A stretch of DNA of 45,739 nucleotides from Trichosphaerium sp. ATCC 40318. Taxonomy: Eukaryota; Protista; Tubulinea. Below, one piece after another: positions 5,343 to 33,525 of the stretch. The stretch covers positions 1-45,739 of the forward strand of contig JALMLS010000223.1 in the NCBI GenBank assembly GCA_038496445.1, given 5' to 3'. A program made the position numbers and the translations under genes. The notes beneath the pieces are model-generated. The model was given only the letters and a program-made list of their open reading frames with translations. It searched no databases and had not been told where the DNA came from. Position 1 is the stretch's first letter, and every line of letters starts with the position of its first letter.

Positions 5343-8746
<3,404 letters not shown>

Positions 8747-8896
8747 CGACTCTAAACCTGAAATAATGTTAAGTGACACAAAGTCTTGCGAAAAAAAAAA
8801 AAAAGCAAAGAAACGGCAACGATTGCTTCGTTTACTTAAGAATTCTACGTGGAACATAAAAAGCGAAACAAATTCTATTAAATAAAATCGATTACC

Positions 8897-10816: not shown

Positions 10817-11371
10817 TAAAGAAAAGAGCAATTAAACAAGTCTCTACCACCCATCAAAAACAAAACCAATTTTTGCTTCTCTTTTTAAATTGTACTACAT
10901 AGTTTAAACTTGTGCTTGTGCACGTGCAACTGGTAAGACTTGCCTAAAGCCCACCTATTGAACTAACTGGATAGCGTATTTTGTTTTCTTCATCCACAAC
11001 AGGTCTTATCGAAAAAGAACGTGAAGCGAGAGTCAAATTTAGTTCTCTTACGGGTTGTGTAAAAGAGCGTGGTCACCTGTCGCGTGAGCGCAAAAAAAGT
11101 ACTAGCGTCAAAATGAGGGGAAAACCGAGCCGAAATTACAAAAATTTGACACAACACGCTATAAACCAAGTAAAAATACTATCGTACGCGTAAATTACCC
11201 AAACCGAACGTTAAAACGGCAATTGAACGAGCAGACTGCAAAAAACACAAAGAAACCACACAAACTTATCAAAACAACCGAGCGAGAGGCGGTAACATTA
11301 CAACAGACCAAACAAACAAACAAAACAGAAGATAAAAAATACAACTTTTATTTAAAATACAAGTGTCGCCC

Positions 11372-12597
11372 TTACTCTTGGCGACTATCATCAGTAACCG
11401 ACTCCTCGTCAGCCTCGACAATATTGTGCACGTAGTCAGGTCCGTAGAGCTTCTTTCCGTGGTCTGTCATGTTATCTATCCTCCTGCGTTTCAGTTCTTT
11501 GCATTCTGCTTTTTTTTCTTGTCGTTTACGTTTATGGTACGTAGCTCGTTTCTTCTGGTGTATAACTAGTTGCTTCTGATTAGCGATCTCTTTATCCCTA
11601 TCTTCGATTTGTTGATTTGAATCAGCGATTTCTTGCTGTTGACCATCGATTACTCGTTGCTTTTCTGCTATATCCTTCTTCTGAAGTACGTTAACTTCTG
11701 CTTGACGTTTCCGTTCTAATTCTAGGCTCTCATTTTCTTCCTTTAGAAGAGCGTTCTCTGAGCTTTGAAGAGCATTTTCTTCCTTAAGGAGCAAATTCTC
11801 TGATCTCTGAAGGTCATGCTCTTCCTTAAAGCGCACACTCTCCTCGCGTAGACGTTCATTCTCTTTTTTTTGGCGTGCATTTTCTTTTTTTTGCTGTTCA
11901 AGTGCTTCTTTAAGAGCTGCTACCCTCTCTTCCAAATAAACCACCCTGGCGTCTTGCTTTTGAGAAGCCAGTTTAAGAGAAGATATCGATTTCTGTGCTG
12001 CATTTAATTTGCCTTTGGCTATGGCGCGAAGAGATGTGTATCGAGAGTCTGCCAAGTCCTAAAGCGCCATTAATATTGACGAGTAAAGCACGTAAATAAA
12101 AAAAAACTTTTGTTTGAGCAGCCCTTTTATCTATGTGAATGCTAAGTGGGCTAAGACGGCTCCAAACTTGTTTAGAAAGCTAACTAAATAACTTTGGAGC
12201 CCTCGAATCCCACATCGTACACAAGCGTGTGCATTGTTAATGCTGCGAATCCACGCGTCACGAGATTTCTAAGGGGCCGTACATTCGATAAAATAAGCCT
12301 CACGCAACAAGAAAATTGCTTCACACTGCTAAGTGCACAAGCTGGCTCCAAACTCATTTAGAAGCTACGAAAATAACTTTGGAGCCCTCGAATACACATC
12401 GTCCCCTTCGCGCGCAATATTAAAGCAACGCGTGCCTTTAGGAATCCGTACAGCACAATTTTAAAGTGGCAACGAGCGTCTAGCCCAGTTTTTCTTTTCT
12501 TACGTGCCTTTAACTCTTGTACATTCGTTTTTAATACAAAGTCATCGTAACCGAGCACTTTTGGCAAGCCTTGAGCGATATCTGTTGTAGTAGTCAT
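11372..12597 (-). CDS. coiled-coil protein with basic NLS-like tail, 2 exons (12597-12508, 12058-11372)
   Basis: The long E/K/Q-rich heptad ORF lacks its own ATG but is preceded by a TTTAG acceptor. Joining upstream MTTTT...QELK through a GC donor at 12507 is in frame (about 258 aa). KRKRQEKK and KRRR near the C-terminus. Confidence 0.6.
12059..12507 (-). repeat. intron-like repeat copy 1 (GCACGT...TTTAG)
   Basis: Homologous to 12775-13203 and 13412-13646. Contains an internal duplication (GCTCCAAACT...ATAACTTTGGAGCCCTCGAAT..CACATCGT twice). Confidence 0.85.
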
Positions 12598-12774
12598 TTT
12601 CTATTAACGTTTTGAATTTGGCGCGCAAATAATTTAAAAGTCAACAAAGACGCCGAAACTAAATTATTACGAAAGTCAGTCTAAAATCAATACTAACTTT
12701 TCAACATTACGTGGAGGTTTGGTAGCATTGATATCAAAGATGTCTACCATTGACTATCGAGTGTATGCCAAGTC

Positions 12775-13203
12775 CTAAAGTGCCATTAATATTGACGAGT
12801 AAAGCACGTAAATAAAAAAACTTTTGTCTGAGCAGCCATTTTATCTATGTGGATGCTAAGTGGCTAAGACGACTCCACAGTCATTAGAGAATCTTAAACA
12901 CTGTGAAGCCTTCGAATACCACATCGAACACTACGTGTGCATTGTTAATGCTGCGAATCCACGCGCACGTTATCTCCAAGCGTCCGTACATTCGATAAAG
13001 TAAGCCTCGCTCAACAGAAAACTTGCTTCGCGCTGCTAAGTACACAAAATTGCTTCAAACTTATTTAGAAGCTACGAAAATAACTTTGAAGCCCTCAGGT
13101 GCACCGTCCCCGCCGTGCGCATTAGTAAAGCACGTGTATTAGGAATCCGTACAGCACAATTTTAGAGTGGCTACGAGCACTTGGCCCATTTTTTTATACG
13201 TAC
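12775..13203 (-). repeat. intron-like repeat copy 2 (GTACGT...TTTAG)
   Basis: Colinear diverged copy of 12059-12507, ending at splice-like signals. Confidence 0.85.
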
Positions 13204-13411
13204 CTCAGTTTACTTGTTGATCAAGCGAATACTTTTCCTTTTCTGGGTAACAAGTTAATACGTTACCAGTTACGCGCACAGCTTACCTTATACCTCCAGG
13301 CGGTGTGTATGATAAATATAACCCGTTCAGTCAAAAAGAAGGCGATAATAGCCCAAACTGCAAACAAACTCGCAAGGCATAATCTCTAGAGAACATACGT
13401 CGCCATAAGGC

Positions 13412-13646
13412 CTAAAGCGCCATTAACATTGGCGAATAAAGCACGTAATAAAAAATCGTTCGTTTGAGCCTTTTATTTCTGCTGCGGCATAGGATGGCTT
13501 TGAAGCTGTTCGAGAAACATTCGCAAACAACTTCAAAGCCCTCGAAGGCAACAACGTTCACGACGTGCGCATTATAACGCCCTCGCGTAGTTTTGGGTTC
13601 GTACAGCACAAATTATCTATTTCGCGCGTTGTTTTTTAAAACGTAC
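13412..13646 (-). repeat. intron-like repeat copy 3, single-unit short form (GTACGT...TTTAG)
   Basis: Shares CCTAAAGCGCCATTAA..TT..CGA.TAAAGCACGTAA, AAGCCCTCGAA and CGTACAGCACAA (plus strand) with copies 1 and 2. Confidence 0.7.
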
Positions 13647-13965
13647 CTTTAATGCGTGTATTTGTAAACTTCATTGATCAAACGGTAGCAAGCGTAAACG
13701 CACATCTTTTCTTTTGAATTGCTTTTCTGGCGGGTAAAAAGTCAATAACCGTAAACATTATGGTCGGTCGTCCTGTCTGCCTAGGCAACCAGGTTAACAG
13801 ACGTACAAAACAAGATGTCTTGATTGTATTATCAGTTCTTTTGAAACACATTGTACACAATGATGATAGAAACGAAACGGTGGTTGTACAAAGTTTTGGG
13901 TTTAATAAATTACATTTTAGTTTTTCTTTACATTTTTTTTTTCTCGTTTCTGTTACTTGTTGTAA

Positions 13966-14580
13966 CTAAAGTCTTTCCATGATGGCATATTTGAAGTCAC
14001 ATAACTCAATATGTCTCTTACATCTAATAAAGGGATGCTTTAATAGCTCATCTAGCGTTGGAGGGTGTTCTTTATCGATGCATCTTTCTACAAAGTCCAA
14101 AAGATCACAATCGGTTTTTGGGTTCATTTCTAACTCTTCAAATCTCGTTCGAATTGTCAAGTCCTCGAAAATTTTATCGAATATATTAGTTCCTCTCGGT
14201 CCGTCTGAAACAATGTCGCATCCAACAACAAGCTGCATAGTTATACTACCAATATCGAAGAAGTCATCTGATTTCCTTCCCGTTAAATCTGTTGCCAGAG
14301 TATCCAAAGAAATATCAAAGTAGGAGGAGATAAAAATATTTTCTGCCTTTAGATTTAGGCCGGCAAAATCCTGTTTATGAAGTTCACCAAGTTTTTTAAG
14401 ACATCCTCCAATAATGGTAGAATTTGTCGCTGTATCTAAGCAACCAAGTTTTTCCACGCCGTATTGTCCATCAATAGCAGTTTCGGTAGGTTCTTCTTGT
14501 CGTGGTCGAGTTTCTTTGTTTCTGAGCTTGTTAATCATCTTTCTTCCAAAGTTCGTTACGGATTTGATAATAGAAGGCAT
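13966..14580 (-). CDS. intronless truncated pseudokinase (C-lobe only)
   Basis: LGELHKQDFAGLNLKAENIFI resembles L.YLH...I.HRDLK.ENIL; DFFDIGSITMQL resembles D.WS.G; DFVERCIDKEHPPTLDELLKHPFI resembles subdomain XI. No GxGxxG, VAIK, HRD or DFG. Confidence 0.7.
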   Translation of the reverse strand: MPSIIKSVTNFGRKMINKLRNKETRPRQEEPTETAIDGQYGVEKLGCLDTATNSTIIGGCLKKLGELHKQDFAGLNLKAENIFISSYFDISLDTLATDLTGRKSDDFFDIGSITMQLVVGCDIVSDGPRGTNIFDKIFEDLTIRTRFEELEMNPKTDCDLLDFVERCIDKEHPPTLDELLKHPFIRCKRHIELCDFKYAIMERL

Positions 14581-16133
14581 CGTAGGTATATTGGATATGA
14601 TGAGGAGTTGCTTCGTCCTTGTAGAAATGAGATTATGACCAAAATGTCCTAAAATTCAAACTGTACTATTGCAGTTTTTTGTAGAGAGGAGAAAATAGTA
14701 TCTATCGCTTTTTCTCATTCCTTACGCGCGTATGGGTACATGTAGGATGAATAGTACGATTTGTCATAAAAATATAACAGAAATAGCGCATACTATGAAT
14801 AAACCCAATAAACATCTACCAGCGTGCGTATTTGGACCATCAAACATGTTTCTAGCAAGTTTCAAAATAATTAACAAAAGTCAGTCCGAAAATGAGCATT
14901 CCTCTGCGTCTTGGCTTGCATGACCCGATTATCCATCTACACAACCGAAGAAATGACTTGCAGTTTATTCCGCAGCAATGACGGTTCTCTATTCACAGCG
15001 CCAAGGCTCTATACGCTAACGAAATGTTACCTACAGTCTGTTTAAAAAAGAAACTCTTTACTATGAAATGAAAACTCTGTAACAACGTTACGAACCTCGG
15101 TAAGTCGAATCTACTAATACAAATCGCCTAAAAGAGCTCAACACCCCAAGATAAATCGCTAAAATGAGTAAAAAAGATGCGAAGCGACAAAATGAGTACT
15201 GGACTATCTTGGTTTCTACGTACATTCTTTTTACCGACAAGAGGCGTGGTTGTAATACCTGTTCTAAGCGCAATCCTTTCAAGCGCTATTACTCCATTTT
15301 ATATGTCAATTTGTATGGCGATCAATTGAATATTGTTATTTCGTTCCAGTGAACACTCGTAATGAACCAGCGGCGTATACAATTGCTTTTGAGTCGTCTG
15401 TGTTTGTAAAATTGGAACGCTGTTAAAACAGGTCCTAAATTGGTGCTATTTGCTTTAGTTTCGCGTCGTACGCCTGCAGTAATTTCTATGATGCGGTGTA
15501 GGACAAATGAACTTATTTAAAGTAGGAACGCTCTGAACATTGGTTATGAGTCATGTTGAACATAATTGAGTTGTTTTAGTACCGTTTTAGGAGGTATGGA
15601 GCGATTTGATGTTTTTGTTCGGTGCTAGTTGGGCTACTGGTTTGATCGATTCGTGTCCTGTTGAGTTTTTACGTTCTCCTGGCGTATTTTAAACCAATAC
15701 CTGCTTATCCTCAAATTAGATAATGCGCAAAGCTTACCACTGTACGTGGTAGTAAGTTGTAACGTACGTGGATCGTCAAGAAACTAGTTGATGCCGTTTG
15801 TTGTTAAAACAGCTGGTATTCTATTTTTGGTTGCTACAAAGGCCATAACTGCGCGCGATAGCTGTTTGGCGTGTTTTGATCAACAATGACTTAAATTTAA
15901 GGTGGCTTAACATACTTGATCAAAACACGTACGCTGCACAACAAACGTGAGTCTAGAAGTGTTACAAGCAAACTAGATCGTGTTAATACGGTAGTGCTGC
16001 TATCCATTCAATAAACTACACAGCACTCATTGTGAAGAACTCTACATTTGTCAGTCTGGTAAACACTTGATTTACTTGTTCTAGCTGTCTTTTTATTTCG
16101 TAATTTTTTCTTTTCGTTTTGAAATTTGTCTAT

Positions 16134-18397
16134 TTATGTCTGACCTTCTACTGCGCCAACATACCCGGCTTTTTTATGATTTATAATCCATAATACTATC
16201 CCAACTATAATTATGAATGCAATTGCACTCAAAGAAACACCAAGGATTAGAGCAAGGTTCGTTTCTTGTTTTTCTTGTGTACATTTTGATCCAGAAAGAA
16301 CAGCGAATAACGCATTGTTACGTTGCTCCCATCTTACACCAATATTAACGCAATCATCTCCATCCGTTGTAATCACTGTATTATTGAATGGGTCTATATT
16401 TTGGTCTGAGCACGTGTGTCGTATGACATCAAGAGTCACCTGAAACGAACAAGGTTTTAATTTTTTTTTTCTTTTTGAATTTAACAAAAAACTAACCTCC
16501 GATCCATTTAGTATCCTGTCTAGTTCGCTTGAATCCAAGGTTATATTGAGAGTACCTTTGGAAATATCCGCGCAACCTTGTACTATAACTGTGGCTTCTG
16601 TGGATAAAACTACAACACTCTCTGTAGTCAAAGACACGTCTCCTAGGTAAGAAATTACACGGTTTTTTTACAGATTTTTTGTGATGCTCACCAACGATTG
16701 TAGTCTCAGTCAGAACGATAATAACGCCTGTATCTAAGATAGGTACAATCCACGATCCATTCTCGCATCTTGCTGATTTTGCTGGTGGCGGACATTGACA
16801 AGATGCATTACATTGATTTATCAGCCAAAGAGGAGTAAGAACTGTTACATTTTGGTAATTATCAGCAATATACAACCGGAAATTTTCCAAATCTTGAGTG
16901 ATACTTTGTGGGTGATACATATCGATTATTTGTGATGGTACCGCTACGATGTAGTGTTAATATTTTGTGTTATTCCATAAGAATAGCAAGCACGTGTTTA
17001 CATTGATGAGTTATGGGTGGTTCAAAAATAGCAACTTGATCACCGTGTGTTACTGAAATTATCAAGTTGCCGAGCAAATCAACTGCTGCTCCAAGAGGGG
17101 TATTGAATTTTGAAATACTTGTATCGTTTAACTCGAATAAGTATGTCCCTATAAGACTTGGTTTAGTTGAGATAAGAATTATTAATTTTGAATGTGGCGA
17201 ATACCTGTGGACTCCTCGAAAACAAAAATGTTGTGTCTTCTTGAAAGAAGATAAACTCTTCCGTTTTCTTCATCTAGTGCAATACCCTGTTTCGCATTTC
17301 ATTAATAAGATTCCTTCATACTATTACATTCGTCTTTGTACCTGTGGATCTTCATAGGGAGAAAAGTCTTGAAGATAAGCTACTTCCAATCGAGGTGCTT
17401 TTTTTTCTTGTTAGCATATTTTTTCTACGAATGCGGTATTGCTTACTTCCTTCTATGTTTATCTTTAATCCTTGGGATGCTTCAGAGTTTGCAACGTATA
17501 TATGCGTAAACGCTTTGTTGAAAACAGTTTGTCGAGTTGCTACTGGATGGTAAGTACGTTGCCAACATCCTGATAATTTTTTGAAAAGAAAAACTTGCAC
17601 CATCTAATGTAGCTCCATCTATGTCAGGTCCAAATGAACGTAATAGATTCAAGTTGTAGTCAACTACAAACTAAAATTAATAAGCAACGGCTGTATGAGC
17701 TCATGCGTGGTTAAGAGTTACCATAGTTGCGGAGTGAGAACAAAAAAGAAAGAAGAATTAACAAACTCAAAATAATTTTTTTGATAATTGCATAAAAGAC
17801 CACGTTCTTTTCAGCTATTTTGTAAGCTGATAAAGAATCCGCAGTGTACATTTCCCGCTGTTTTTTTATGTCCGATTTTATAAAATCTACCTCGTCGTAA
17901 CACGTGGTATTTTTCGCAAAACTTTTCTCTTGTGAAAACGCACAAAAATACTTTTCTCTGCGTCAACAAAATATATGTGCTTCCGTTTACGATCTACAGC
18001 ACAACCTTGAGGGTTTACTAGATTTTCACCAAGATACTCTGTTTGTTCTTGTACTAGCGTCCCTATTTGTAAAGAAACAAACCAATTAGTTTTTTTGATT
18101 AAAACAAATTGGTAAATAAATAAACTATGATATTAATAACACTCTTGTTGACGACATTCGTACAATTTTTAGTGTATAGTGATATCCTTTTTTCACGTGT
18201 TACCGCTAGTAAACCATTACCAAGATAATCTACTTCTTGTGGCCCTTCGTCAAGAACAGCTGTTTGTGTGACGTCGTATACTATAGGTACCTCTATTAAT
18301 TACATGGGAAGGGAAATAAAAAAGTATTACTTTTTGCAAAGGAAGGTGCGCAATAGAGCATAGAGAGTATTATACACGCTTCTAACGCCAATGGCAT
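16134..18397 (-). CDS. type-I membrane/cell-surface protein (multi-exon), function unknown
   Basis: Signal-like MPLALEACIILSMLYCAPSFA. Cys-containing juxtamembrane region (CQCPPP..RCENGSW, VQGCA, DDC, SKC), then TM LALILGVSLSAIAFIIIVGIVLWII and a short tail. 5' exons less certain. Confidence 0.65.
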
Positions 18398-19162
18398 CCA
18401 ATAAAACCTCATTACAGCCTTTAACACTGAGGGCGCTTTGAATTCTATCTTTTGGAATGGTCAGCTTTTTTCATCTTGTAACAAATCGAAGAAAAGCACG
18501 TGTTGTGTATTGCAAAACACTTAATAAGTAGTTATATATTTGTGACATGGCTATATCTCTAGTAAACTTACATAACGTAACCTTGCTATGATCACGTGCT
18601 GATAAAAATAGAGGTTGCATTTCAACTTATTCGGTTATTAAAAAGCAATGATTGTTTCCTTTCTCAACTTGTTTGTAGCCAATCATACGACCAAACCTTT
18701 TACCAATTAATGATGTACAAATGGCTAATGGCGTGGATGCCATGAAATTGTTCATTTGTTGCGTATTCAGATTCTGACGATACGAAAGAACAAGAGAAAC
18801 AAAAGGAAACATTAGTGTTCACAGTGACAATAGTGTTGTCTTAGAAAGGCATAGTGTCGTCCTTTTACACATCGTATTTGTACATGTCGACAGTGTCAAG
18901 CAACTATGAATGATAAATTGGAAGTGAATGTAGCGAAAGAAATGGTTCAAGAATGTAAATACAATAATCATTCATGGCAATGAGGTTTATGGTTTAATTC
19001 AATCAAGGTTTGGGTATTCAAGGTGCTCATCAGGTTGACATGTATAAAGAAAGAAAAAAAAACCGTATTTCAATCTTGTGGTTTAAAAGAATTAAATGAT
19101 CAATCTATATTCTTTGTACTCACAACTACACCAAGCACCTCAGCCCTAAACATCAAAAAATT

Positions 19163-19492
19163 ATGGCTGCTACTCCTGAATGTCGGATCAAATCAATTAC
19201 TGAACTTGAAATTGCTATTATTGAACACGCGTTAAGTACAAAAGGCCACTATGGATGGGTGCTATTTGGACCTATCTTGCTAGTAAAACACGTATCTCAC
19301 TTGATACGTATAGTATTACACGATCACATTCTTATACAAGCGAGCTTCCCAGAACACAAAATACCTTTCGCTCTACTTAATAAAGTGTTCGTTATGATCA
19401 CAACACAAGGACCATTTCCAAAAGGACAGTACTTTCCTGTAAGTTCAAGAAATAATTACCAAGAGTATTTACGAAGACATGGAGTAAACTAA
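19163..19492 (+). CDS. small orphan protein, divergent family member
   Basis: NKVFVMITTQGPFPKGQYFPVSSRNNYQEYLRRHG aligns ungapped to the family motif. TCAATC motifs upstream. Confidence 0.65.
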   Translation: MAATPECRIKSITELEIAIIEHALSTKGHYGWVLFGPILLVKHVSHLIRIVLHDHILIQASFPEHKIPFALLNKVFVMITTQGPFPKGQYFPVSSRNNYQEYLRRHGVN

Positions 19493-20207
19493 ATATCTGT
19501 AACAAATTATGAATCAATCAATAAACGCTTTTAAGTGAACGTTGAGTCCTCTCAGAAGTTTATGATAGCCAACACTGAAAGCGTACAACAGAGCTTTCTT
19601 TAAGTATAGTGCTGACTGAACAGGAATTAGTGTACTCATTTTGCCATAACGCTGTTGAGGTGAGGAGAAACTCGAAAATAGACTTAAAAAAAAAAGTGTC
19701 AAAACAATTTCCTTTGTTGACATTGTGTTAGGTCCCTATCGTCCATTGGCTCCTACAAACAACAGCGCCTGATTGTAGGACAACCTATCTATTGGCTTGA
19801 CCGCTTGGTCACAAAGCCTGATACCCTTGATTTATTAAAGTCGCAGACACAATAAAACAACCACCTAAAAACCACCTACTTTTCCGATTACATTGTAGTC
19901 AATACACAATTGCTCTAGCCGTTGTTACTCCTCTAGGTTGTTGACTTTGTATGTTAAATCGCCAACCTCCCTTACCCTCCAACGTCCGTAAAACCCGGTT
20001 TGTACAGCCATAAGGTTTTAAAAACGACTCAAGATAGAAACTAGGATCGTTTCTTTCTCACCACGAATATCAATCAGGTTTTTTTTTGATTGATAGTGCG
20101 GACTACGTAATTAGTCTCCATGTACAACAACGCTAGTTCTGGGTAAACATGTTAAAGTAGATATCTCTTGTTTGTTAGAATACAGGCTTTTATTATCCAA
20201 TACAAGT

Positions 20208-20537
20208 CTACAATTTTTTTCTGTTTCTTTTTTTCGCTGATTTGCATGGTTTAACGCCTTGTTTTTTAAGTAGCTTCTTGTACTTTCTTCTCATTTTTTT
20301 AGGTAGAATATCTGTTGGTGGGAATGTGCCTCCTGCCATTAGAAGAGTATATACTTGGTTCATCTTATCATCCATATTAGATGTGTTTGGTATTAAGTAA
20401 TCGAGAAGAGGGAATGAAATTGTGTTGTCAAGCTCTTCTTCCATCATATCAGCTAGACGTTCTATTTCAGGTGCATCATAGCATGCTTGTAGCTCATTAA
20501 CTGACTCTGCTAACTCAAAGGAATATGTTTCGGACAT
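20208..20537 (-). CDS. small orphan protein, cluster member 1
   Basis: MNQVYTLLMAGGTFPPTDILPKKMRRKYKKLLKKQG. Shares the conserved upstream block (about 100 bp). Acidic N-terminus and basic tail. Confidence 0.8.
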   Translation of the reverse strand: MSETYSFELAESVNELQACYDAPEIERLADMMEEELDNTISFPLLDYLIPNTSNMDDKMNQVYTLLMAGGTFPPTDILPKKMRRKYKKLLKKQGVKPCKSAKKRNRKKL

Positions 20538-21058
20538 GTTGTGTGTTGTGTTGTGTTGTTAAAATAATGAACTTTTTTCATGATTGATTTGGATCTTACA
20601 TTCTCTTAACGTAACAAATATCAATCACTTGTGATTGGTTTGAGTGACCTTTCAATCATTGACAGCATTTATCTATTCGTTCATGCGAAAGCATACTTTG
20701 CCTTGACGTGGTAGTTCAAATTTCTAACGCTGAAGTTGAATTAACCGCATTTTTCAATCAGTTTATCATCACAAACTCTAAACTGCTCAAGCGCCTGTAA
20801 TTCGCTCGTTTTATTCATCACTACATCCGTTGCTACTTCCGCTATCGCTTTTGGGAGATACAACTTGCTAAGCTAATGTATCCAATCCGAAAACAGACGT
20901 TCCCACTGCAATATTATACGACAAGTATTGCGTGAGGTGTGGTTTATTGCTTATTTAAGAAACGACAAAGGAATAACGATTTAATTGAGGTATTTATTTA
21001 TTTTAATGTGTTTATGATGCAGTCTATGCGTTGTTGTAGGCTATTAGCATGTTTTTGG

Positions 21059-21295
21059 TCATATTAGAATACCACATTTTCTCAAATGGTTTTTGTACTT
21101 TCTTCTCACTTTTTTAGGGAGTTTGTCCATTGGAGGGAATCTACAGCCTGCCATTAACAATCCATAGACTTCTGTCATATCCTCGTTATCTTTGTTCCAT
21201 TTTTGGAGGTATTCAATAAACGGGTTGGCAACTTGTTGTTCTTGTTGCGCCTCTTGTGGATTGTTTGCTTGCTTTGAATTGTTTGTATTGGACAT
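21059..21295 (-). CDS. small orphan protein, cluster member 2
   Basis: YLQKWNKDNEDMTEVYGLLMAGCRFPPMDKLPKKVRRKYKNHLRKCGILI. ORF intact across all paralogues. Confidence 0.85.
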   Translation of the reverse strand: MSNTNNSKQANNPQEAQQEQQVANPFIEYLQKWNKDNEDMTEVYGLLMAGCRFPPMDKLPKKVRRKYKNHLRKCGILI

Positions 21296-21580
21296 GTTGT
21301 GCGTTGTGTTGTGTTGTTAAAATTATGATCTTTTTTCATGATTGATTTTGATCTTACATTCTCTTAACGTAACAAATATCAATCACTTGAGTGATACCCT
21401 TTGAACGTATACTAGATTTTACTTGTCCAATGTGCATTGCACCGAGTGTGAGTATTATTCAATTTATCACTCAAGTGATTGATATTTGTTACGTTAAGAG
21501 AATGTAAGATCAAAATCAATCACGAAAAAAGATCATAATTTTAACAACACAACACAACGCACAACATGTCCAATACAAAC
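21281..21580. repeat. near-perfect inverted repeat (arms about 21281-21396 and 21465-21580) forming a divergent promoter pair
   Basis: The arms are reverse complements with one mismatch seen (CATG/CACG). 68 bp spacer. Confidence 0.9.
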
Positions 21581-21850
21581 TTCTCAGTACAAACAAACAG
21601 TATACCAGAGGCACAAGAACTTGATGATATGATTTATGCAATGCGATATATTGCAATTGAAGAAGGAAATCAATTCGATGACATTGTGCTTATTAAATAC
21701 CTTCAAAAATGGAATACAGATAACGAAGATATGACAGAAGTATATCTTATGTTAATGGATGGTTGTCGATTCCCTCCAATGGACAAACTCCCTAAAAAAG
21801 TGAGAAGAAAGTACAAAAACCACTTGAGAAAATGTGGTATTCTCATCTAA
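21566..21850 (+). CDS. small orphan protein, cluster member 3
   Basis: Same C-terminal domain with a distinct N-terminal segment (ELDDMIYAMRYIAIEEG). Confidence 0.85.
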   Translation: MSNTNFSVQTNSIPEAQELDDMIYAMRYIAIEEGNQFDDIVLIKYLQKWNTDNEDMTEVYLMLMDGCRFPPMDKLPKKVRRKYKNHLRKCGILI

Positions 21851-22574
21851 GCAAACGCTTTCTCGCTCTTTGTCAACAACAAAGCCAATACTGTACCATA
21901 TCATAAACATTAAAAACAAATAAATACCTCTATTGAACCGTTATTCCTTTGTCGTTACTTAAGAGCAATAAATACCAACACTACAGTAGCCGCCATTACC
22001 AGATACACTAACTGGAAACATGGTAGACCCAAATATCAAAAAGACAGATTTCGTAGGTTGTCGCTTCACGGCTATAGCCGATTACATATTTGTTGCTGAG
22101 TTTGTTAACCGGACCACAACTCCTAGATTATTGGACTCTCATTTCTCGTTTTTTGTTAACACTGTGAGCTTTGAGTTTGTTTTAACAAGTAACAATCCCA
22201 TATTTACAAGCATTTGTCACAGCAACTATGAGCCATGGTAATGGTTTATGTTGTGAGGTATGACGCTTTAAAAAACAGAAATCGTTATTTTTTTATCGAT
22301 AATACAGGTCAACACCATAGTCAGATGTAGGCAATAGCGGATGATGCAGGTGATAAATAACCATACACAATGGAGAAAAATAACCCGTTTTGGTTTCTGG
22401 TTTGATGGTCAATCTGCTGATTGAAATATACGTTTAATCACCTTTACACTATAATACAGTTATACCAACCACGCCATTGGCAAAACCAGTCTTATCATTA
22501 TCACGCTACAATATAGAAAAGTGTCAATGATTGAAAGGTACCACCAACCAGTGATTGAAAGGAGTAACTCATAC

Positions 22575-22671
22575 CAATCAAGTGATTGATATTTGTTACG
22601 TTAAGAGAATGTAAGATCAAAATCAATCACGAACAAGATCATAATATTAACAACACAACACAACGCACAAC
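22575..22671 (+). promoter_or_regulatory. conserved upstream block of the orphan family (also upstream of the starts at 20537, 21295, 21566, 23865, 24335)
   Basis: CAAGTGATTGATATTTGTTACGTTAAGAGAATGTAAGATC.AAATCAATCACGAA...AACAACACAACACAACGCACAAC-ATG is nearly identical in six copies. Confidence 0.75.
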
Positions 22672-22905
22672 ATGTCCAATACAAACAATTCAAAGCAAAC
22701 AAACAATACACAAGAGACAGAACAACAACAAGTTGCCAACCTATTTATCGAATACCTTCAGAAATGGAACAAAGATAACGAGGATATGACAGAAGTATAT
22801 GGATTGTTAATGGCAGGCTGTAGATTCCCTCCAATGGACAAACTCCCTAAAAAAGTGAGAAGAAAGTACAAAAAGCATTTGAGAAAATGTGGTATTCTAA
22901 TCTAA
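22672..22905 (+). CDS. small orphan protein, cluster member 4
   Basis: Near-identical to the proteins at 21059 and 23632. Confidence 0.85.
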   Translation: MSNTNNSKQTNNTQETEQQQVANLFIEYLQKWNKDNEDMTEVYGLLMAGCRFPPMDKLPKKVRRKYKKHLRKCGILI

Positions 22906-23052
22906 GCAAACGCCTTCTCGCTCTTTGTCAACAAAGCCAATACTGTACCATAAACATTAAAAACAAATAAATACCTCTATTGAACCGTTATTACTTGTCG
23001 TTACTTAAACAAGCAATAACATAAGAAGTAGTCAGGTCAACAAGACTGGTTA

Positions 23053-23248
23053 TAAGCCTGAATTTGCGGGATGGTTTGTGAACATAGGAGACCTTGTGCA
23101 ACACTGCAAGCTATCCTTTAGTGTATCCTTATGGAGGATTAGGCAAGCATAAAATTAGAAAGGCACGTGAGTGCTACAAATTGGGGTGGCCTGTTCAAAG
23201 TAGGCTTAACCTAACGTCGAAAAAATAGCGTTTTTTCATGTCAAATCC
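23053..23248. mobile_element. MITE-like element, copy truncated on the left
   Basis: Homologous to 35021-35211 (TAAGCCTGA...CTGCAAGCTATCC.TTAGTGTATCCTTAT.GAGGA...CACGTG..GCTACAAA...GTAGGCTTAAC...GTCAAATCC). Confidence 0.7.
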
Positions 23249-23631
23249 GTATTTCTGATTGAAACGTTTTTCACGCACTCAAATCACCTTTACCTTGTAA
23301 TGTTTGTACCTATCACGCCATTTTGATAAACAGTTAACTTGCATAAGGTATCAAATGTAATCCGAGTTATACTCAACCTAGTACATCCGTTGTTACTTCC
23401 TTACTCATTTTTTTGACTATCCGGCTCACTACTTTAATCTACGCAAAAAGATTTTTGTGCAAGCCACAAATTAATGTATGATGTTGTGCTGCGACTATCT
23501 TTAAGCGAGGTATTATTTATTGCTTGTTTAAGAAACGACAAAGGAATAACGATATTATTGAGGTATTTATTTATTTTAGTGTGTTTATGATACAGTTTAC
23601 GCATTGTTGTAGGCTATTAGCATGTTTTTGG

Positions 23632-23865
23632 TCAGATTAGAATACCACATTTTCTCAAATGCTTTTTGTACTTTCTTCTCACTTTTTTAGGGAGTTTGTC
23701 CATTGGAGGGAATCTACAGCCTGCCATTAACAATCCATAGACTTCTGTCATATCCTCGTTATCTTTATTCCATTTTTGAAGGTATTCAATAAACGGGTTG
23801 GCAACTTCTTGTTGTTCCGCCTCTTGTGTATTGTTTGTTTGCTTTGAATTGTTTGTATTGGACAT
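23632..23865 (-). CDS. small orphan protein, cluster member 5
   Basis: Near-identical to the proteins at 21059 and 22672. Confidence 0.85.
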   Translation of the reverse strand: MSNTNNSKQTNNTQEAEQQEVANPFIEYLQKWNKDNEDMTEVYGLLMAGCRFPPMDKLPKKVRRKYKKHLRKCGILI

Positions 23866-24334
23866 GTTGTGCGTTGTGTTGTGTTGTAAAATTAAGAACT
23901 TTTTTCGTGATTGATTTGGATCTTACGTTCTCTTAACGTAACAAATATCAATCACTTGTGATTGGTTTGAGTGATACCCTTCAATCATTGACACTTATAC
24001 GATAGCTTAACAGTACAGCAAATATTGTGAATTACATGGTATAATGTCTTACAATGTAAAAGTGTTGAACTAAACGTATTTCAATCAGAAGATTGAATAT
24101 AAAGATGACAACTTTAGTGATTCAGCGTTATCACAACTATTGCTGTCATATAAGTATCCAACGATTGAAATGTGTGACTAAAACCAATCATGAATGAATA
24201 GATAAATGCTGTCAATGAAAAGTATCACTCAAACCAATCACAAGTGATTGATATTTGTTACGTTAAGAGAATGTAAGATCCAAATCAATCACGAAAAAAG
24301 ATCATATTTTTAACAACACAACACAACGCACAAC

Positions 24335-24601
24335 ATGTCCAATGCAAACAACTCATTCACTTCATTAGACTCACTTAGTGACGGTGATACTATGGATGTT
24401 ACACTTGATGAACAACAGAATGTTATTCATCGATCACCGCTCATTGGTTACTTTCAAACATGGAATAAAGATAACGAGGATATGACAGAAGTATATGGAT
24501 TATTAATGGCAGGCTGTAAATTCCCTCCAATGGACAAACTCCCTAAAAGAGTGAGAAGAAAGTACAAAAACCACTTGAGAAAATGCGGTCTTCTAATCTG
24601 A
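24335..24601 (+). CDS. small orphan protein, cluster member 6
   Basis: Same C-terminal domain with a distinct acidic N-terminus (SLDSLSDGDTMDVTLDE). Confidence 0.85.
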   Translation: MSNANNSFTSLDSLSDGDTMDVTLDEQQNVIHRSPLIGYFQTWNKDNEDMTEVYGLLMAGCKFPPMDKLPKRVRRKYKNHLRKCGLLI

Positions 24602-24992
24602 ACAAAAACGTTCCAATAATTGCAATCAACGCCAAAGGCATTGTAGCTACTACTTGTAACTCGCGTTGTTGCATTGGCTTCAACATAAATAAAACTATCA
24701 TATTTTTCAATCAAAAATGTACCACAATTAATGCAGGCGCGTGTTAGAGAGTATCCGGTAATATAAACGCAGCGTGACATGTTAACCTGTTTTCTGTTAA
24801 ATCTTATTCTTTCCCTTATAAACGGTCCTATTGTGACCTATTGGGACGTTGCACAATGCTGTAAAACTAGAACGTGTAATTTAGCATTGCCTGAAGTCTA
24901 CAGACTGTCCGAACATTTCGAAAAAACCAGAATTTCTTGTTTTTGATTGAAATTTCTACTCCGCTCAGTAATAATTTGAGCCTTGTTCCTTG

Positions 24993-27627
24993 ATGGCGGC
25001 AACGCCACCAAACGAAATACGGGAACTTGCGCTACTCTCAGAACATTTTGGGGCACTTGTAAACAATAACGCCCAAAGCGATGTTACTTTTATGGTTGGC
25101 GTCGAAGACGAAGAACCACAGCCAATATACGCGCATAGATTAATTCTAGCTTGTAGAAGGTACGATTTTCTGTAATTCGTATAATATACACCGTAAACCT
25201 TCCCCCACTCGTTAAAAACTTCAACAACGTCGTATTTCATAATTTTACATTGTTTGGGGTAAATACATTTCCTAAACCTCTAAATCTGCTTTGATTTATT
25301 AATACAGTAACAAGACGGCGTAAAAAAACGATTTCAGTAATCTTTTTCTGTAAACAAAAGTGTAAAATGGAACAAACTAACTTTTTTTTTCTTTTTTGTA
25401 GCCCAGTTCTTGCTTCGATGCTTCTTGGATCTCTTAAGGAAAGCCAAGAACGTGAAATACCAATAGGAAATATTAGACACGATATCTTCAAATTAATGAT
25501 GCAGTACGTACACGTGGTTTTAAAAACAGCGTAAAGAGAAAACACGAAACACGTGTTTCTGACAAACACAAAAACCGTTTCTTTTTTGAAAACTTTTTTT
25601 TTCTGAAATTCGGTTCGTATTCGTTTTCTTTACTCGCTTGAACGTTGGTATCTTCACCACACCTGTGCCATATTTTATTCTAGACTATGGGACAATTTGT
25701 TTGTCTGTTATTATACGACAAAGCGAGAAATAACGTTCGAACTATTTTTTTTTTGAAACAATTACTGCTTCTTTATTGTTTCTGTTTGCTTACTGTTGGT
25801 GTTCAGGTATATTTACACAGGTGCCGTGAGCGTTACAGCAGAGACTGTTGTCCCTCTCCTTGCCTCTGCCGATCAGTATCAATTGCTACAGCTGAAGAGC
25901 AAATGTTTTAATTACATGGAAAAGTTTTTAACAAAAAACACAGTTTGTACATTATTACAAACAGCCATGATGTATGGTAATCATGGTACGCATATTAATA
26001 GTTTTTATTTAAATTAAAATCAACAAAAATGAGCTTACACAATACAACAGACTTTGCTAGTAAGTGCAAAATGTTCATATCATGTCATACAAGAGATGTC
26101 ATAAACTCAGATGATTTCTTGACATTGTCACAACAGTCACTCCGTGAAATGTTAATGAGTACGCTTCTAAACATATTGTCAACAGTCTTTACATACCCTC
26201 TTACATGATTGATTTGTTTATAGCGGATCAACTTGATGTAGAGGAGCTAGAACTTTACAAAGCGCTTTTGAGATGGGGTGAAAAAAATCTGGAAAAAAAC
26301 AACAACAGCACCAGCCTGAAGGAAACTCTTTTACCTCTTATTCCCTTTATAAGGTACCTTACATACTCAAAACATATTTAGTGAATGTTAGATAACTTCA
26401 AATGTCTTTTCATTAACGAAAACAAAGGTTTCCTCTTATTCTCCCAGATGACTTAATGAATATTGTTAAGCCAAGCGGAGTTGTTCCTCTTGAGGTTTAT
26501 GTTCAAGTACGATTATAAATTCATTTGTTTATTTCTTTTACTGATAACCTTTTAAAAGGCTATAGAGTACCATTTATGCCCTGATAATGTTGACACGAGT
26601 GGTACAATGTTCAAAGTGAGTTTTATTTTTTTTTACTTCATCAATATTTTCGAGAGTTTTTTTTCAGCTTTTCCCACCATACTTGATCCTGTAACTCCAA
26701 TATGCTATTGGAAACGGGTGTATTGATATGTGTTACATCGATTTTCACACCATAGCTTATCGTAAATCATGTTATTAACTCGTTTTTTTCAAATAACAGC
26801 CAAGGGTACCTGCTCCTGTATTCACGTGGCAAGGAAACTCAAAAGAGTTTCAGTTTACTGAAGGAGGTACGCAGGCATATAAAACACTTTTTCACATGCT
26901 TATGTGTTAACAGGGTTAAACGCAAAGCGTATTGGGTCTAACTACTGGACGAAAGTGTTTGGTTCTCATGGATTTTCTTCAGGAAAGGTAAAGTTCATAT
27001 TTCTGTTTGTTTGAGCTCACGCCAATACATGATTCTCATTTTCTCTAATTGTCGTTTATCAAGGCCTTTTGGGAAGTTAAGATTGTAAATATCAATGGAA
27101 ATGATAAGAGTGGACTTATCATTGGTGTGACAAGTTGTAAAGAACGGTATGTAGATTTTGTTCATTTTTTTTTCTTGATTTGAAGAAAAAACGGTACCAA
27201 CGTACTATCAAATAATATAAATGAGCCTGATACGAAATATACAATATTAGAATTATAAAATAGACACAAATTCTAAAATCAAATTCAGTCAGTGTGCCAC
27301 AGGAGCAAAACTTTTTTTTTTCTTTTCTGTGAAAAAAAATACTCGCTTACCAGCTTTTTGTTTAGATCGGCTTATTGTAAAGATCTTGGTATTGGTATGG
27401 CTGGTCATTGTTATAGGCTTTCATCAGAATTAAAAGCAGTACCTATAGAAGTATCAACAGGGTTTAAAATAGGGATTCAACTTGATCTTGTTAAGCTTAA
27501 AGCTTCTTTTTTTGTTAATGGTATTGCTTTATCAATGCAAGGAGAGCTAGAGAAAGGACTGACATACTGGCCAGTAGTACATATGCATTATAAAGATGAT
27601 GCAATAGCATTGGTTGAAGTACAATGA
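24993..27627 (+). CDS. BTB/POZ-BACK-SPRY domain protein (multi-exon; putative Cullin3 adaptor)
   Basis: BTB: SDVTFMVG...IYAHRLILAC.SPVL...YIYTG...LLASADQYQL. BACK: FLTLSQQSL...ELELYKALLRWG...IRFPLI. SPRY: GFSSGKAFWEVKI...IIGVT...IGIQLDL...FFVNG...YWPVV. Confidence 0.88.
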
Positions 27628-28261
27628 AAATAACCACTTAAGTAACAAAACGTGAAAACATTCAATGAATGGATGAAAAAAAGATCATCATTCGATAAGA
27701 AAAAAAAAAAAAAACTGATGTAATTTTCTAACAATGTATGTGTTGATAAAATACTTATAAAAAAATATCTTATATTATATTCTTACTTGTACTATGTTGC
27801 TTTGTCACTGACTTTACTTGTTGATCAATTACTACAAGACTTAGTGTCAAGCGTTTGGTTGTACTACAAGATTGACAATATAAAGTCAGACACGATAGAT
27901 TAGCAATGATGAGTAGCAACCAATCAAAACTACTATGCCGTCCCTAAAGTCCTTTTTTTGTTGTAAAAATGCTATTTGTTTCCTTTCTCATGTAACACTA
28001 CCTCAAAAGTCCTTATTTTAATGTAACCATGCTTGTTCTTTACAACTTGTGTAGAGATGGGCTCAAGCTATTAGCAATACGTTGAAAAAAAAAACAAGAA
28101 AAAAAACACTATGAAAACAAATAGCTTCATTGTTTTATGCTCATTGCCACCTCTAGATTCACTGCCTCCAGTCAAGACAAATAGCAAAAAATTCTTTTCA
28201 GGGCATACTATTTATTCTTGTACAGATAATAGTAAAAAGTGAACAACGTAAGTTAAGTATC

Positions 28262-29051
28262 TTAGTAGGTTTCTTCAAACTTCAATTTACCAATCTCATT
28301 CCATGTCATATACTTTCCTTTCAATCTATCATTAGAGTAATAACAAAGTCTTTGAAGTTGTCCATTATTATACCATTCCTTGTACTCTCCATTTTTCTTA
28401 CCATTCAAATAATTACCATGTGCAATTAATACACCTTCTTCATTCCACTTTTTGAACTCTCCGTCTCTCTTGTCTTTGACATACTTACATTGTAAAATCA
28501 ATTTACCATTCTTGTTCCAAGTTTTGTAATCTCCTTCTTGCCTACCTTCTTTGTAATAAGATTCTTCGTTTAATATACCATTACTATGCCAGTATTTACA
28601 CACTCCTTCTTTGTTATTATTTACATAATGACATCTCATACAGAGTCTTCCGTTGTCAACAGAGTAATGTTCAAGCTCTCCTTCAATCATGCCATTGATA
28701 AAATTATACTTCTTTATCAGTTTGCCATTACTCCACTCTTTATACACACCTTCTACTTTACTGTGTACAAACGTAACTTGTTTTTCAACAACAACAGGTT
28801 CACTATATAATCCCCACCCGTTATTTCGTTTCCTGCGGCTCAGCCACTTTCCATGTTTCTTCATTTCATCATCGAACCTCGTTGTTATTGCTGAGTATTT
28901 AGATAACAAAGGCCACTTAACATATACTTCATAGTCTAAATCCATGATATCTAGCTGTATTTCATGCGGGAGGCTTAGGAGAAATGTACTATTAACCGAA
29001 GGAAGGCAGTTTGGCTAAATACAAGTAGTAGTTAGCCAAGAATTACAGCAT
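28262..29051 (-). CDS. F-box-like + MORN-variant (YwqK-like) repeat protein; exons 29051-29047 and 28988-28262
   Basis: ATGCT|GTAATT...TAATAG|T ACA gives MLTFLLSLPHEIQLDIMDL (F-box-like), followed by repeats of the form EG.YK.W..NG.L.....Y.NGK. Confidence 0.78.
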
Positions 29052-29479
29052 CTTTGCCTTTCCACTTTTTTTGTTCAAAAAATCCAGGTGAGCGTAGGAG
29101 AGAGAAATAAAATCTAATTTATAAAACGATGTATTAAAATACACTCTCGAGTCATATTTTGCAGAAAATCTTATGTCTTGACCGCATCGCATACCTTGAA
29201 GTTTGTTTTTGCCATTTCTGCAATTTTAAAGGGTACAGGAAAGATGAGTATGCGTGTAAGAGATGTGGCCTTAGTTGTAGGATAATAGATAATTCAAAGA
29301 ATTTTATTTGAAATTTGGTTACGAGGTATACAGTCAAGCATGGTCACATGCTAAGAACTCATTCTCTTAGATCCAGAGAAGGTTGTTTTCGGTATGGCAG
29401 CTTTGGAGAGGATAGTTGGTATGTATGGCGTTTCAAGTAAGTTATTTGTTAGGATAAAATAGTCCATTTATCAAACAAG

Positions 29480-29835
29480 GGACGTACCGGCCCAAACGTG
29501 CCATCTTTTATGAGATATTGTTCACAACCACGTTGGGTCTATTACTCCACAATACGACTATTGTTCTCAGACTGAGTGAGCTACCAAACGACATTATTGC
29601 GGCATTGGCAGGTGTACACACTATCAACCTATGTCGTTATAAGTCAATAACAGACAATGGCATTGCAGCATTGGCAGGTGTACATGAGATTGATTTATCA
29701 TCTACAAATGTAACACATGCAGGTTTAAAGGCAATTTCAGGTGTACACACCATCTGGTTGGAGTACCGCAGAAATGTAGAGCTACCAGTTATTAAAACAT
29801 TGACAGGTGCACATAAAATACGTTTTCTTGGATAA
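29480..29835 (+). pseudogene. decayed F-box/LRR gene
   Basis: AQTCHLL*DIVH resembles CQTCHRMASVIH of the 41772 gene. LAGVHTINL...ITDNGIAALAGVHEIDLS repeats. Stop and frameshift present. Confidence 0.7.
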
Positions 29836-30268
29836 ACTGTGATAAACAAGCTCAAAATCAAGACATTTATCGCTTTTATTGATAATTCTTCAACTCCAGC
29901 ATGAACAGATGTACAACTGTTACCTTACCAAAGGTTGCTGAAATGGGGACCGGGATTGTATTTTATATATGTCAACACTGAAGGGAACAAAACTAGTTAG
30001 GTGTCTTTCCACGTGTACAAAAAATAAAATGATTTCCAAATTTCTCAACATTGTAATACACTGCATTTTGATTTACTAACTAGCTACTGGATTTTTATCT
30101 ATTGTAGTCACGTGTTTATTATTATTACGAAATTACACGAAATTTCTCTAGTCACGTCTTCTCAAACACGTAGCCAGACAACCGTTGATTTGCAGAGCAA
30201 TATATTTGGACAGAGTGTGGTTCTCGTTTTATAAACTAACTATAATTTCACTTTTCGAAAAGTTCTGT

Positions 30269-31131
30269 TTACATCACTGAACAAGATTGTACACGCTGGC
30301 CATTGTTATAGTTGGCTTCTTCGTTCAAAATACCATTTTCATCCCATGCTTTGAAATCTCCTTCACGTCTACCATTGATATAATGGCAATTCTTTGACAG
30401 TTGGCCAGTGAAATACCATTGCTTGTACTCCCCTTCAATTTACCATTGACGAAAAAACAGTACTTCGATAGTTGGCCATTAGCATACCATATCCTGTGCT
30501 CTCCTTGTCGAGTCCCATTAACGTAACTTGTCTTCTCCCTTAACTGGCCATTTTTATGGTACCACATTTTTAACTCTCCATCAATTAATCCGTTGACATA
30601 GTGCCATTGTCGTTTCAGTTTACCACTTTCATACCATACTTTGTAGTCTCCCACAAGTTTATCTTTTTTAAGATAATATTGCTCTTGTAATTGACCGTTT
30701 TTATACCATAGTTTAACTATTTGATCTTCATTGCTTCCATTGATGTAGTGCTGACGACTTGCAAGTTGACCGTGTTCTACTTGTTGGCCATCTATGTACT
30801 GATATCTGTCATGTACCTGACCATTTTCATACCACGTGATAAAATCTCCATGTCGTTTACCATGTGACATACTCATTTGACAAACTAGCTGCATTTTGTT
30901 TTGCTGTTTGGTTCTAAATTTTTTCCACTTTCCATGTTGTTTCATCTTGTAATCATACCTTGATGTTGTTGCTGTGTACTTTGATAGACTTGGCCAAATT
31001 AAATACACGTCACATGATAAATCAACAAAAATAAGCTGTATCTCAACAAGAAGGTCTAGCAATCTACATGTAGGTTGTAACGTGTCGGTAGTACATCTTC
31101 AAGAAAAACAAATTACATACCTCGTTTCCAT
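30269..31131 (-). pseudogene. F-box-like + MORN-variant repeat gene with apparent frameshift; exons 31131-31121 and 31063-30269
   Basis: ATGGAAACGAG|GTATGT...TAG|A TTG gives METRLLDLLVEIQ. MORN repeats continue in another frame after a G-run near 30430 (GEYKQWYFTGQL...EGDFKAWDENG). Confidence 0.72.
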
Positions 31132-31479
31132 AGTTTTCAAACACAGCTGGTTCCTCGCTGTTCTTTGTTGTTAATGCATTTCGCATGAACTCCACCTGTT
31201 ACCTCTCCTTCTCCCTACGAAATGAATGGTTTTAGTGGATTATTAGGTACAAGCTTGTACTTATTTTTATCAATTCACGTGGTTTGTGTATTTTGTTTTG
31301 AATGACGCCAAGCCTTGACACGCCTTGACTGTTTTACTGAGAAGCTGTCAAAAACAAAGTCAGTTCGATCCAATTGTTGAGTAGTAATAAATCCTGAAAG
31401 TAACAAGGTTCACAACAGATGGGTAAGGTTCTTTCCCCAAAAAAATAACTGAACGAGAGGTGCAAGTCTTCTGTTTTAT

Positions 31480-33525
31480 TTATTTTTTTGAGATTGAAAC
31501 AGTAAGGATTGTATCTGGTTGTATATTTACTATGGGCTGAACCAATACCTTTGTTCCTTGAAGCTTCCAAGTTGCAGTTCCTGGAGGTGTGATAACAACA
31601 GTGAAACCGTTGGGGTAGTGGTACTCTACAAGACAAAAAAATAAACACGTGACTTCTCAAAAGATAAATAGTTCTTGCCTTGGTTGACAAAAATCTCTGT
31701 TGGTTGCTTAATTTTAACATCAACTGTGTATGAAAGCTTAAAATCTCCGGTTTCAGGATCAAAAGTCATCGATTGAATACGTCCAGCAGTCGCTGCAATA
31801 AGAATAATTTAAAAAAAAAATGTACAAAAGATGTTTAGCAAAGGAAGCTTACCTTGTGCGTATATTCTGCTAAGGGCCTTAACTTTATCAACTAAGAGAT
31901 CTCCTGCTTCATCATAAACTCCAAAGGACCATCCGGTTATCCTAACAAATGCTTTGTACTCCCTTTTTGATTTAGCCGAGAAATGTGACTTGATATAAAG
32001 ACGAGTTACCAAGCAATCCAGCTCTGCAAGTATTGATCTGCCAATTTAGATACATTATGTATATCTTCAATGGTATCGAGACCATACTCAGTGAGCATAC
32101 CACCACATTGGAGCTTCTTGATATCAGCCATACGCGCACTGAAACCACCTATAAAGTAATAAGTTGTGGTTTTTTTTTTTGGATAAGAAAACAAACGTAC
32201 TGGCGTAGTCTAGTTGTGGTGGCAAGTACAAGTGATAACTGAACACACTTCTATTTTTATAAACGTCTCCACCAGGGACATTTTCGAATCCAACACCAAA
32301 GTCATCCCAAGTTACTGACTCGAAGAAAATTGAGTGCTAAGTAAATGTTACCGCTAAATAATGGTTTTTTGCATCTCTTTTTTTTTGTCAACATACGTCT
32401 TCATCAACAGATCGAATTGCTTTCTGTACATTCTCATACATAGGAGCAAGATTTTTAGTATCAGCAATAGTAGGTACCATCAATGTTGGATCCAAATAAA
32501 TATCTCCAGCCCAAGGCTAAAGATGTTATTGAATTACAAAAAAACACAAAAAATGTATGGGATTCTTCGTTTTACCTCGTTCATCAATTCGTATCCTACT
32601 ACGTACTTTGAAGACTTGTAGAGTTCTGCTAAAGTCTTCCAGTACCCAGAGAATGCATCTTGTACACCGTCAACATTCGAATAAAGAGACTGGTAAGCTG
32701 ATGACTGCTCTTCAGCGATTTGATAAGTAGCCCAAGAGTACTTATCACAGTCTTTCTTGAACGGATGCCCAGTGGCGTTGTTGATAGGATATGCGATATC
32801 AACTGGTTCTGGAAACTTGAAAGCACCTGATCTTGAAACAGCAGCCCAGTCTGAAAGTTAAATGAGATCCCTCGAGGTACGGAAGTGGCAGCAAACGTAC
32901 CAGGAATGCCTTCACCGCAATACTTTTCAGATAACCTAAAGTGTTGTTTTAGTCTAAATTTCTTAGCAGTGCGTTTGTCTTACAGGTCTTGATGAAAGTC
33001 AACAAGTGTGTATATATCATGTGATGCCATGTCATCAACCAACTTCTTCATAACCTCTTAAGAAAACAAAGAATGTTAAAACGAAAAATCAACAACACTC
33101 TTTGGTACAAGCAAACTAAACACTTACGCAAATACGTTTGATTGTATTGACCACGTGTTGGTTCAACTCCAGGCCACATCTAAAATGTCACGTGAGCCAT
33201 ATTAAGCAAAAATAGGAAGATGTTTGAGCCGTACTACTCCTAATCTGACTATATTCATACCCCAACTCTCTAGTTGTTCAAGATCTTTCTCTGCGAAAGA
33301 AGTGTAAGGGTTGAACCTAAATAGGCACTTTTAGCCGACTTTTAAAAGTAGTAAGAGGACAAATAACGGACTCATTGACATCTGGGTGCCATGTTTGTAG
33401 ACTACAGTTACGCCATGAAATATGCGTTCACGTCCAAATTCATCAACAAGCTTTTGTGTTTCTGGAATGACTGAAATAAAAGCGTACGAGGTACAAACAA
33501 AAAAGATAAGATAAAGAACTTTCAT
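31480..33525 (-). CDS. GH5 glycoside hydrolase, endoglycoceramidase-like (multi-exon; apparent frameshift near 33393)
   Basis: Signal peptide. DEFGRERIFHGV, WGMNIVRLGVMWPGVEPTRG, DFHQD, CGEGIP, GYELMNEPWAG (acid/base), LTEYG (nucleophile), LSRIYAQATAG, TEIFV. Confidence 0.88.

Follow-up and report, generated by a model that had tools for sequence, protein, structure and literature searches.

The six small genes packed into 4.4 kb of a contig of Trichosphaerium sp. ATCC 40318 (JALMLS010000223.1, positions 1 to 45,739) are a truncated, short-form offshoot of a family of at least 42 loci whose members share a larger domain of about 75–95 residues, here called the GPFP domain. The family is genuine, undescribed and species-restricted, and its host genome is rich in orphan families. 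With moderate confidence, we read the array (genes g1 to g6) as the recent tandem and inverted amplification of one Trichosphaerium-only subfamily, jointly switched on, homogenised by gene conversion and encoding binding proteins that are probably nuclear. The stretch analysed, which we refer to as the window, is 45,739 nt long and is the whole of contig C285 (G+C about 36%).

The array and its six genes

An earlier note on this DNA had reported six open reading frames (ORFs) in the strand order - - + + - +; all six are where it had put them, all are intact, and they encode proteins of 77–109 aa (Table 1). The protein alignment bears out its description of a conserved C-terminal domain (acidic, then proline-rich, then basic) preceded by four types of N-terminal segment: one in g2, g4 and g5, one with an insertion in g3, and one each in g6 and g1. 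There are 25 invariant columns, and all except the first two residues fall in the C-terminal 45–50 aa, where an acidic stretch is followed by a short helix ending in G, the motif FPP..D.LP and a basic helix with R-R-K-Y. Every one of the six proteins is bipolar in charge, with a net charge of -3 to -13 upstream of the FPP motif (isoelectric point, pI, 4.1–4.5) and of +8 to +16 from FPP to the C-terminus (pI 10.7–11.3). The basic helix is amphipathic, with the hydrophobic residues V, Y and L at i, i+4 and i+8, the others being K, R or H. The N-termini are hydrophilic (MSNTNNS...) and, judged by eye, have no apparent signal peptide, as had been claimed.

In each gene AATAAA lies 14–87 nt past the stop codon (6/6). 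Two pairs are arranged head to head, g2/g3 with 68 nt and g5/g6 with 232 nt separating their upstream blocks, and the direct and inverted repeats located by a repeat finder are whole-gene paralogues. As the copies diverge by 4–30%, the array is not an assembly duplication, a possibility that the earlier note had left standing. Neither Rfam families nor tRNAs were detected in the window.

A family of at least 42 loci

Searching the genome (70.3 Mb, 642 contigs) with one array protein as query found two further short relatives, on contigs C1 and C496. Two window ORFs (2243-2650 and 19163-19492) and members on C111 and C116 were then added as seeds of a profile, which detected 37 family loci at E <= 10; a broader hidden Markov model profile detected 42 at E <= 0.01, on more than 20 contigs, and both counts are lower bounds. 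The array genes score E 1e-18 to 1e-22 against one profile (A7) and E 1e-31 to 1e-35 against another (A4), which places all six in the family. The suggestion of an orphan family therefore survives in part: no relative beyond the species was found, but the six genes are not self-contained.

The long forms have 110–220 aa. A W..D...H helix comes first in their pattern, followed by an aromatic helix, a hairpin region of acidic character, a helix that closes with G-P-F-P, and finally F/L-P and R..Y..Y/L. The core signature of the family is an aromatic-rich helix, G-P-F-P, four residues, F/L-P and R..Y..Y/L. In a maximum-likelihood tree the short forms make up a single clade of seven (g1–g6 and the C1 copy; support 97/95) and g2–g6 are a recent burst within it, so the amplification proposed in the earlier note holds and is recent.

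A HMMER profile scan of 1.84 billion representative proteins gave four matches, all from MMETSP0405, which is Trichosphaerium sp. ATCC 40318 itself (taxid 498012). Two of the four are identical to genomic long-form loci, and some long forms are thus transcribed. The six array genes are missing from the protein collections, perhaps only because transcriptome ORF calling applies a length cut-off.

Family members also lie side by side elsewhere, at C1:1127513-1128623 (L033/L042, a short form beside a long form), C1:178686-179921 and C83:176471-177654. One long-form gene has three near-identical copies (window 2243-2650, L029 on C319 and L030 on C378); three copies exceed two haplotypes, and some of the redundancy in the assembly is therefore duplication or higher ploidy.

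Predicted structure and comparison with known folds

AlphaFold2, given 21 family sequences only, modelled the long form with a predicted local distance difference test score (pLDDT) of 87.7 and a predicted template modelling score (pTM) of 0.79. Its four helices span 13-31, 42-53, 71-84 and 95-106, and residues 58-67 form a hairpin. The short form g4 is predicted as three helices (pLDDT 78), without the first helix and the hairpin of the long form. On this prediction the array proteins retain just the final three helices; they carry an acidic tail at the N-terminus, and their last helix is unusually basic and amphipathic.

Neither form resembles a known protein at a level that we would trust. 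Among 16 family members searched against Pfam-A the best E values were 0.002–0.2, all far under the gathering thresholds, and a profile search of PDB sequences gave 0 matches at E <= 10. The best Foldseek match to the PDB (E 0.95) and the best BFVD fold match (E 0.4) are at noise level, VIA-align in its wide setting peaked at Z 5.4 (long form) and 5.1 (short form), values that lie within the noise for helical models, and the ESM Atlas gave a template modelling (TM) score of 0.43 or less by shape and nothing for either form by feature. No fold match was therefore found for the predicted models, yet this does not in itself prove a new fold.

Several candidates were considered and rejected. By eye, the short helix, G..P loop and basic helix with R..Y recall the LEM and HeH/SAP domains, a likeness that served as a lead only; the GPFP loop is about three residues longer, and no match to LEM, HeH or SAP came out of Pfam, of the profile search of the PDB or of the fold comparisons. 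A WH2 or thymosin-type motif has no Pfam match, and the LPKKV string is lost in the long forms. The homeodomain-like MatA and MatB proteins of Dictyostelium (PMC5580921) resemble the GPFP proteins in combining a core of helices, about 50 aa long, with disordered tails. However, there is no sequence or structure match to them (0 PDB profile matches at E <= 10; no homeodomain or Mat entry among the best 50 Foldseek and VIA-align matches), the loop between the last two GPFP helices has 12 residues rather than being a tight turn, and the GPFP family has many loci. An origin from giant viruses was likewise rejected: all four HMMER matches are Trichosphaerium transcripts, and BFVD gave no match below E 0.4.

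Regional conservation and selection

Conservation within the array is strongly regional. Mean pairwise DNA identity is 91% (minimum 88%) from -110 to -1, 55% from -220 to -111, 57% in the N-terminal coding part, 85% in the C-terminal domain (C-domain; 93% within g2–g6) and 64% in the first 120 nt 3' of the stop codon. The earlier note was thus right that each gene has a near-identical upstream block of about 100 bp and that this DNA is better kept than the 5' coding DNA (91% against 57%).

For the C-domain, the pooled ratio of non-synonymous to synonymous differences per site (pN/pS, Nei-Gojobori method, 49–50 codons) is 0.20 for g2–g6 (pairwise 0–0.39), and g1 against the others gives 0.29–0.44 with a synonymous divergence (dS) of 1.0–1.4. 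Purifying selection acts on the C-domain protein. The N-terminal part, with pN/pS of about 0.8–1.15 between types, looks neutral and fits an unconstrained acidic tail; the diversifying selection suggested in the earlier note is not borne out at a ratio of about 1. Synonymous divergence in the N-terminal part is two to three times that of the C-domain, and each gene is therefore a mosaic of pieces that differ in age or in homogenisation.

The promoter block and its TCAATCA boxes

The whole block (about 110–115 nt) has six copies in a search of some 70 Mb of genome, all of them in the array. When the block is aligned with the much more diverged sequences upstream of the C1 short gene and of a g1-like gene on C496, four elements remain as a footprint: GATTGA near -95, AAATCAATCA near -55 (the reverse complement of the GATTGA-type first box), an ATCATA-T-rich box near -35 and a CA-rich leader running into ACAACATGTC. 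The block folds as a hairpin with an unremarkable z of -2.4, which we read only as the inverted box pair. The blocks of g1 and g2 contain an out-of-frame upstream ATG (ATCATGAAAA; window 20570-20590 and 21328-21348) where g3–g6 have ACG, and in these two of the six genes it could serve as a small upstream ORF.

In the window AATCAATCA occurs 8 times (0.95 expected) and TCAATCA 30 times (10.6 expected). Because 26 of the 30 cluster at the array locus, between 18999 and 24950, TCAATCA is not a general promoter word here. Of 15 other family members, 8 also carry it in the 250 nt ahead of the gene, against about 0.8 expected, and we read it as a candidate family-specific cis-element. The co-regulation proposed in the earlier note is very probable, judged from a private block and from TCAATCA-type boxes that are kept, at about -95 and -55, in diverged paralogues.

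Selection on the motifs is insufficient to explain the similarity of the blocks. The g1 block is 88–96% identical to those of the other array genes, inter-motif spacers included, whereas the spacers have diverged in the outgroup promoters. The spacers of g1 and g6 match too (block 96% identical) while the coding synonymous sites of these genes are saturated, and gene conversion or recent replacement of the block within the array is therefore needed. We suggest that it is probably gene conversion that keeps the block copies alike.

A second version of the locus

Positions 11691-31642 of the window have a collinear counterpart in contig C496 (20,212 bp), whose left flank is 94–96% and whose right flank is 98% identical to the window. 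Genome-wide, these flanks occur only on C285 and C496, save for a 361-bp end overlap on C432. Between the flanks lies an interval that cannot be aligned (Table 1). In C496 this core holds four intact long-form genes of 120 aa each in the palindromic order - - + +, together with a g1-like copy that is 65% identical to g1 and has an apparent one-base frameshift, perhaps an indel of the assembly. Redundans had been used to reduce the assembly, and the culture was monoclonal (PMC10521059); C496 is therefore most simply a leftover alternative haplotype, the alternative being a segmental duplicate.

To the right of the array, window 24900-26100 holds a BTB/POZ gene, which in the available part of Table S2 of the genome paper (PMC10521059) is TRSP21497 (435 aa) with TRSP2336 as its C496 twin. 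Window 26140-26500 is 100% identical to C432:23575-23935, probably a contig-end overlap.

Other features of the window

A dispersed repeat of about 285 bp (window 3777-4062) has more than 30 copies at 78–88% identity on many contigs and may be a miniature inverted-repeat transposable element (MITE). The unit of about 127 bp at 36929-37062 forms tandem arrays on C10, C61, C270, C2, C200, C81 and C71. Positions 41800-45739 match C111:7761-11707 at 97%, a second duplicated or haplotig stretch, and for the F-box/LRR gene at 41772-42827 there are more than 30 paralogues, which are about 70% identical to it in DNA.

Table 1. Positions in the window of the array genes, their upstream blocks and related features
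Feature	Position	Strand	Remarks
g1	20208..20537	-	109 aa; most diverged member of the array; acidic N-terminal half (net -13), long basic tail (net +16)
g2	21059..21295	-	78 aa; modal type
g3	21566..21850	+	94 aa; modal type with N-terminal insertion
g4	22672..22905	+	77 aa; modal type; AlphaFold2 model of three helices, pLDDT 78
g5	23632..23865	-	77 aa; modal type
g6	24335..24601	+	88 aa; N-terminal segment of its own type
g1 promoter/leader block	20538..20648	-	96% identical to g6 block despite saturated coding synonymous sites
g2 promoter/leader block	21296..21396	-	head-to-head with g3; 68 nt from g3 block
g3 promoter/leader block	21465..21565	+	
g4 promoter/leader block	22560..22671	+	inverted TGATTGAT / ATCAATCA pair, ATCATAAT box, CA-rich leader
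g5 promoter/leader block	23866..23972	-	head-to-head with g6
g6 promoter/leader block	24227..24334	+	
Adjoining long-form member, 109 aa	19163..19492	+	directly left of the variable interval; kept on both contigs
Remote long-form member, 135 aa	2243..2650	+	near-identical copies on C319 and C378
Interval not alignable with C496	19599..24927	.	C496 counterpart 7939-13508

Discussion

We suggest that a single factor recognising TCAATCA would turn on all six genes together and that gene copy number may serve dosage. Within the array, gene conversion would keep block and C-domain uniform and leave the N-termini to drift. The proteins themselves would be small intracellular, probably nuclear, binders, whose basic helix may contact nucleic acid or some acidic partner; being truncated domains, the short forms may act as competitors or modulators of their long-form relatives. 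The string K-K-V-R fits the classical monopartite nuclear localisation signal, which would favour the nucleus.

Several points weigh against this model. The six-gene alignment, searched by word index against 5.8 billion proteins, found no match. Exact-sequence look-ups of contigs with g4 and g1 found none either, in a collection from which records of this genome may be missing, and neither a sequence relative nor a fold relative in Pfam, the PDB, Foldseek, VIA-align, BFVD or the ESM Atlas offers a functional handle. It is amino acid composition alone that points to a nuclear location and to binding by the basic helix. The selection estimates come from 49–50 codons, and the gene pairs are not independent. 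Very recent copying of the block, with no regulatory meaning, could in principle also give the promoter conservation.

The array resembles concerted tandem arrays such as the histone and ribosomal DNA repeats in its head-to-head and tail-to-tail units and in having a promoter and part of the coding sequence homogenised well below the synonymous divergence. It differs in that homogenisation reaches only parts of the GPFP unit and leaves the spacers and the N-terminal coding segment distinct. The Trichosphaerium genome has 7,489 ORFans, 26.5% of its gene models (PMC10521059), and like the amoeba ORFan multigene families counted there, the GPFP family is found in one species only and has small proteins, intronless or intron-poor genes and local clusters. 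Unlike them, it has a profile, a confident predicted fold, a family promoter box and a short-form offshoot, none of which is described in the accessible part of the genome paper (PMC10521059). What the earlier note had offered as a candidate undescribed system is an undescribed protein family; it is not a demonstrated multi-part system.

Of the alternatives, a family engaged in conflict or defence, for instance against giant viruses, with fast turnover and variable N-termini recognising changing targets, survives best, and we consider it unlikely. The confinement of the family to one species, its variable N-termini, the different gene content of the two locus versions and the F-box/MORN and F-box/LRR families nearby are all compatible with such a role, as are the heavy giant-virus gene traffic and the 26.5% of ORFans in the published genome (PMC10521059). 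However, the N-terminal pN/pS is about 1 and not above it, there is no viral relative among the 1.84 billion proteins or in BFVD, and no partner gene typical of defence was found.

It is less probable still that the locus is idiomorph-like, its two interval versions carrying unrelated sets of small helical proteins, with a fold unseen elsewhere, that determine cell type, mating or self-recognition. The flanks are shared, and confined to the two contigs, around a non-aligning core of 5.3–5.6 kb with six short forms in C285 and with four long forms and the broken g1-like copy in C496. At the mat locus of Dictyostelium, also an amoebozoan, the alternative versions likewise contain small genes unrelated to each other, and the small proteins MatA and MatB consist of three helices with disordered tails (PMC5580921); the Trichosphaerium life cycle is complex and possibly sexual. 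The GPFP family, however, has no known link to mating and has at least 42 loci, which form several clusters rather than a single locus; it has no PDB sequence match, and homeodomain-like proteins and MatA are absent from the best structural matches. C496 may, moreover, be a segmental duplicate rather than an allele, and the copy number of tandem arrays commonly differs between haplotypes.

That the ORFs are non-functional (chance frames, decaying pseudogenes or the cargo of a repeat or transposon) we regard as very improbable: the short forms have no database relative and the C496 g1-like copy has an apparent frameshift, but all six frames are open despite DNA divergence, the C-domain pN/pS is 0.20, the profile ties the short forms to transcribed long forms, the ATG context, stop position and AATAAA are conserved, and the block has only its six copies in the array, with no terminal repeats or transposase found. 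A transposable element, which the earlier note had named as an outcome that would refute its reading, or a MITE was rejected separately: the unit of block and gene occurs only in the array, with no dispersed copies found, and its inverted repeats are the whole-gene paralogues.

An amplified, jointly regulated and conversion-homogenised array remains our preferred reading. What had been six ORFans is now a family defined by a profile, with a confident predicted fold unmatched among the solved and predicted structures searched, a candidate cis-element and a clear selection signal, and it gives an entry point to the role of species-restricted genes in an organism whose polymorphic life cycle is unexplained. 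The promoter, in which deep conservation of motifs is combined with recent homogenisation of the whole block, is a compact example of concerted evolution limited to regulatory DNA and a single protein domain. With its second version, the locus becomes a candidate, open to testing, for structural polymorphism or for a cell-type locus, and if the two versions were indeed alleles tied to cell type, the importance of the finding would rise sharply.

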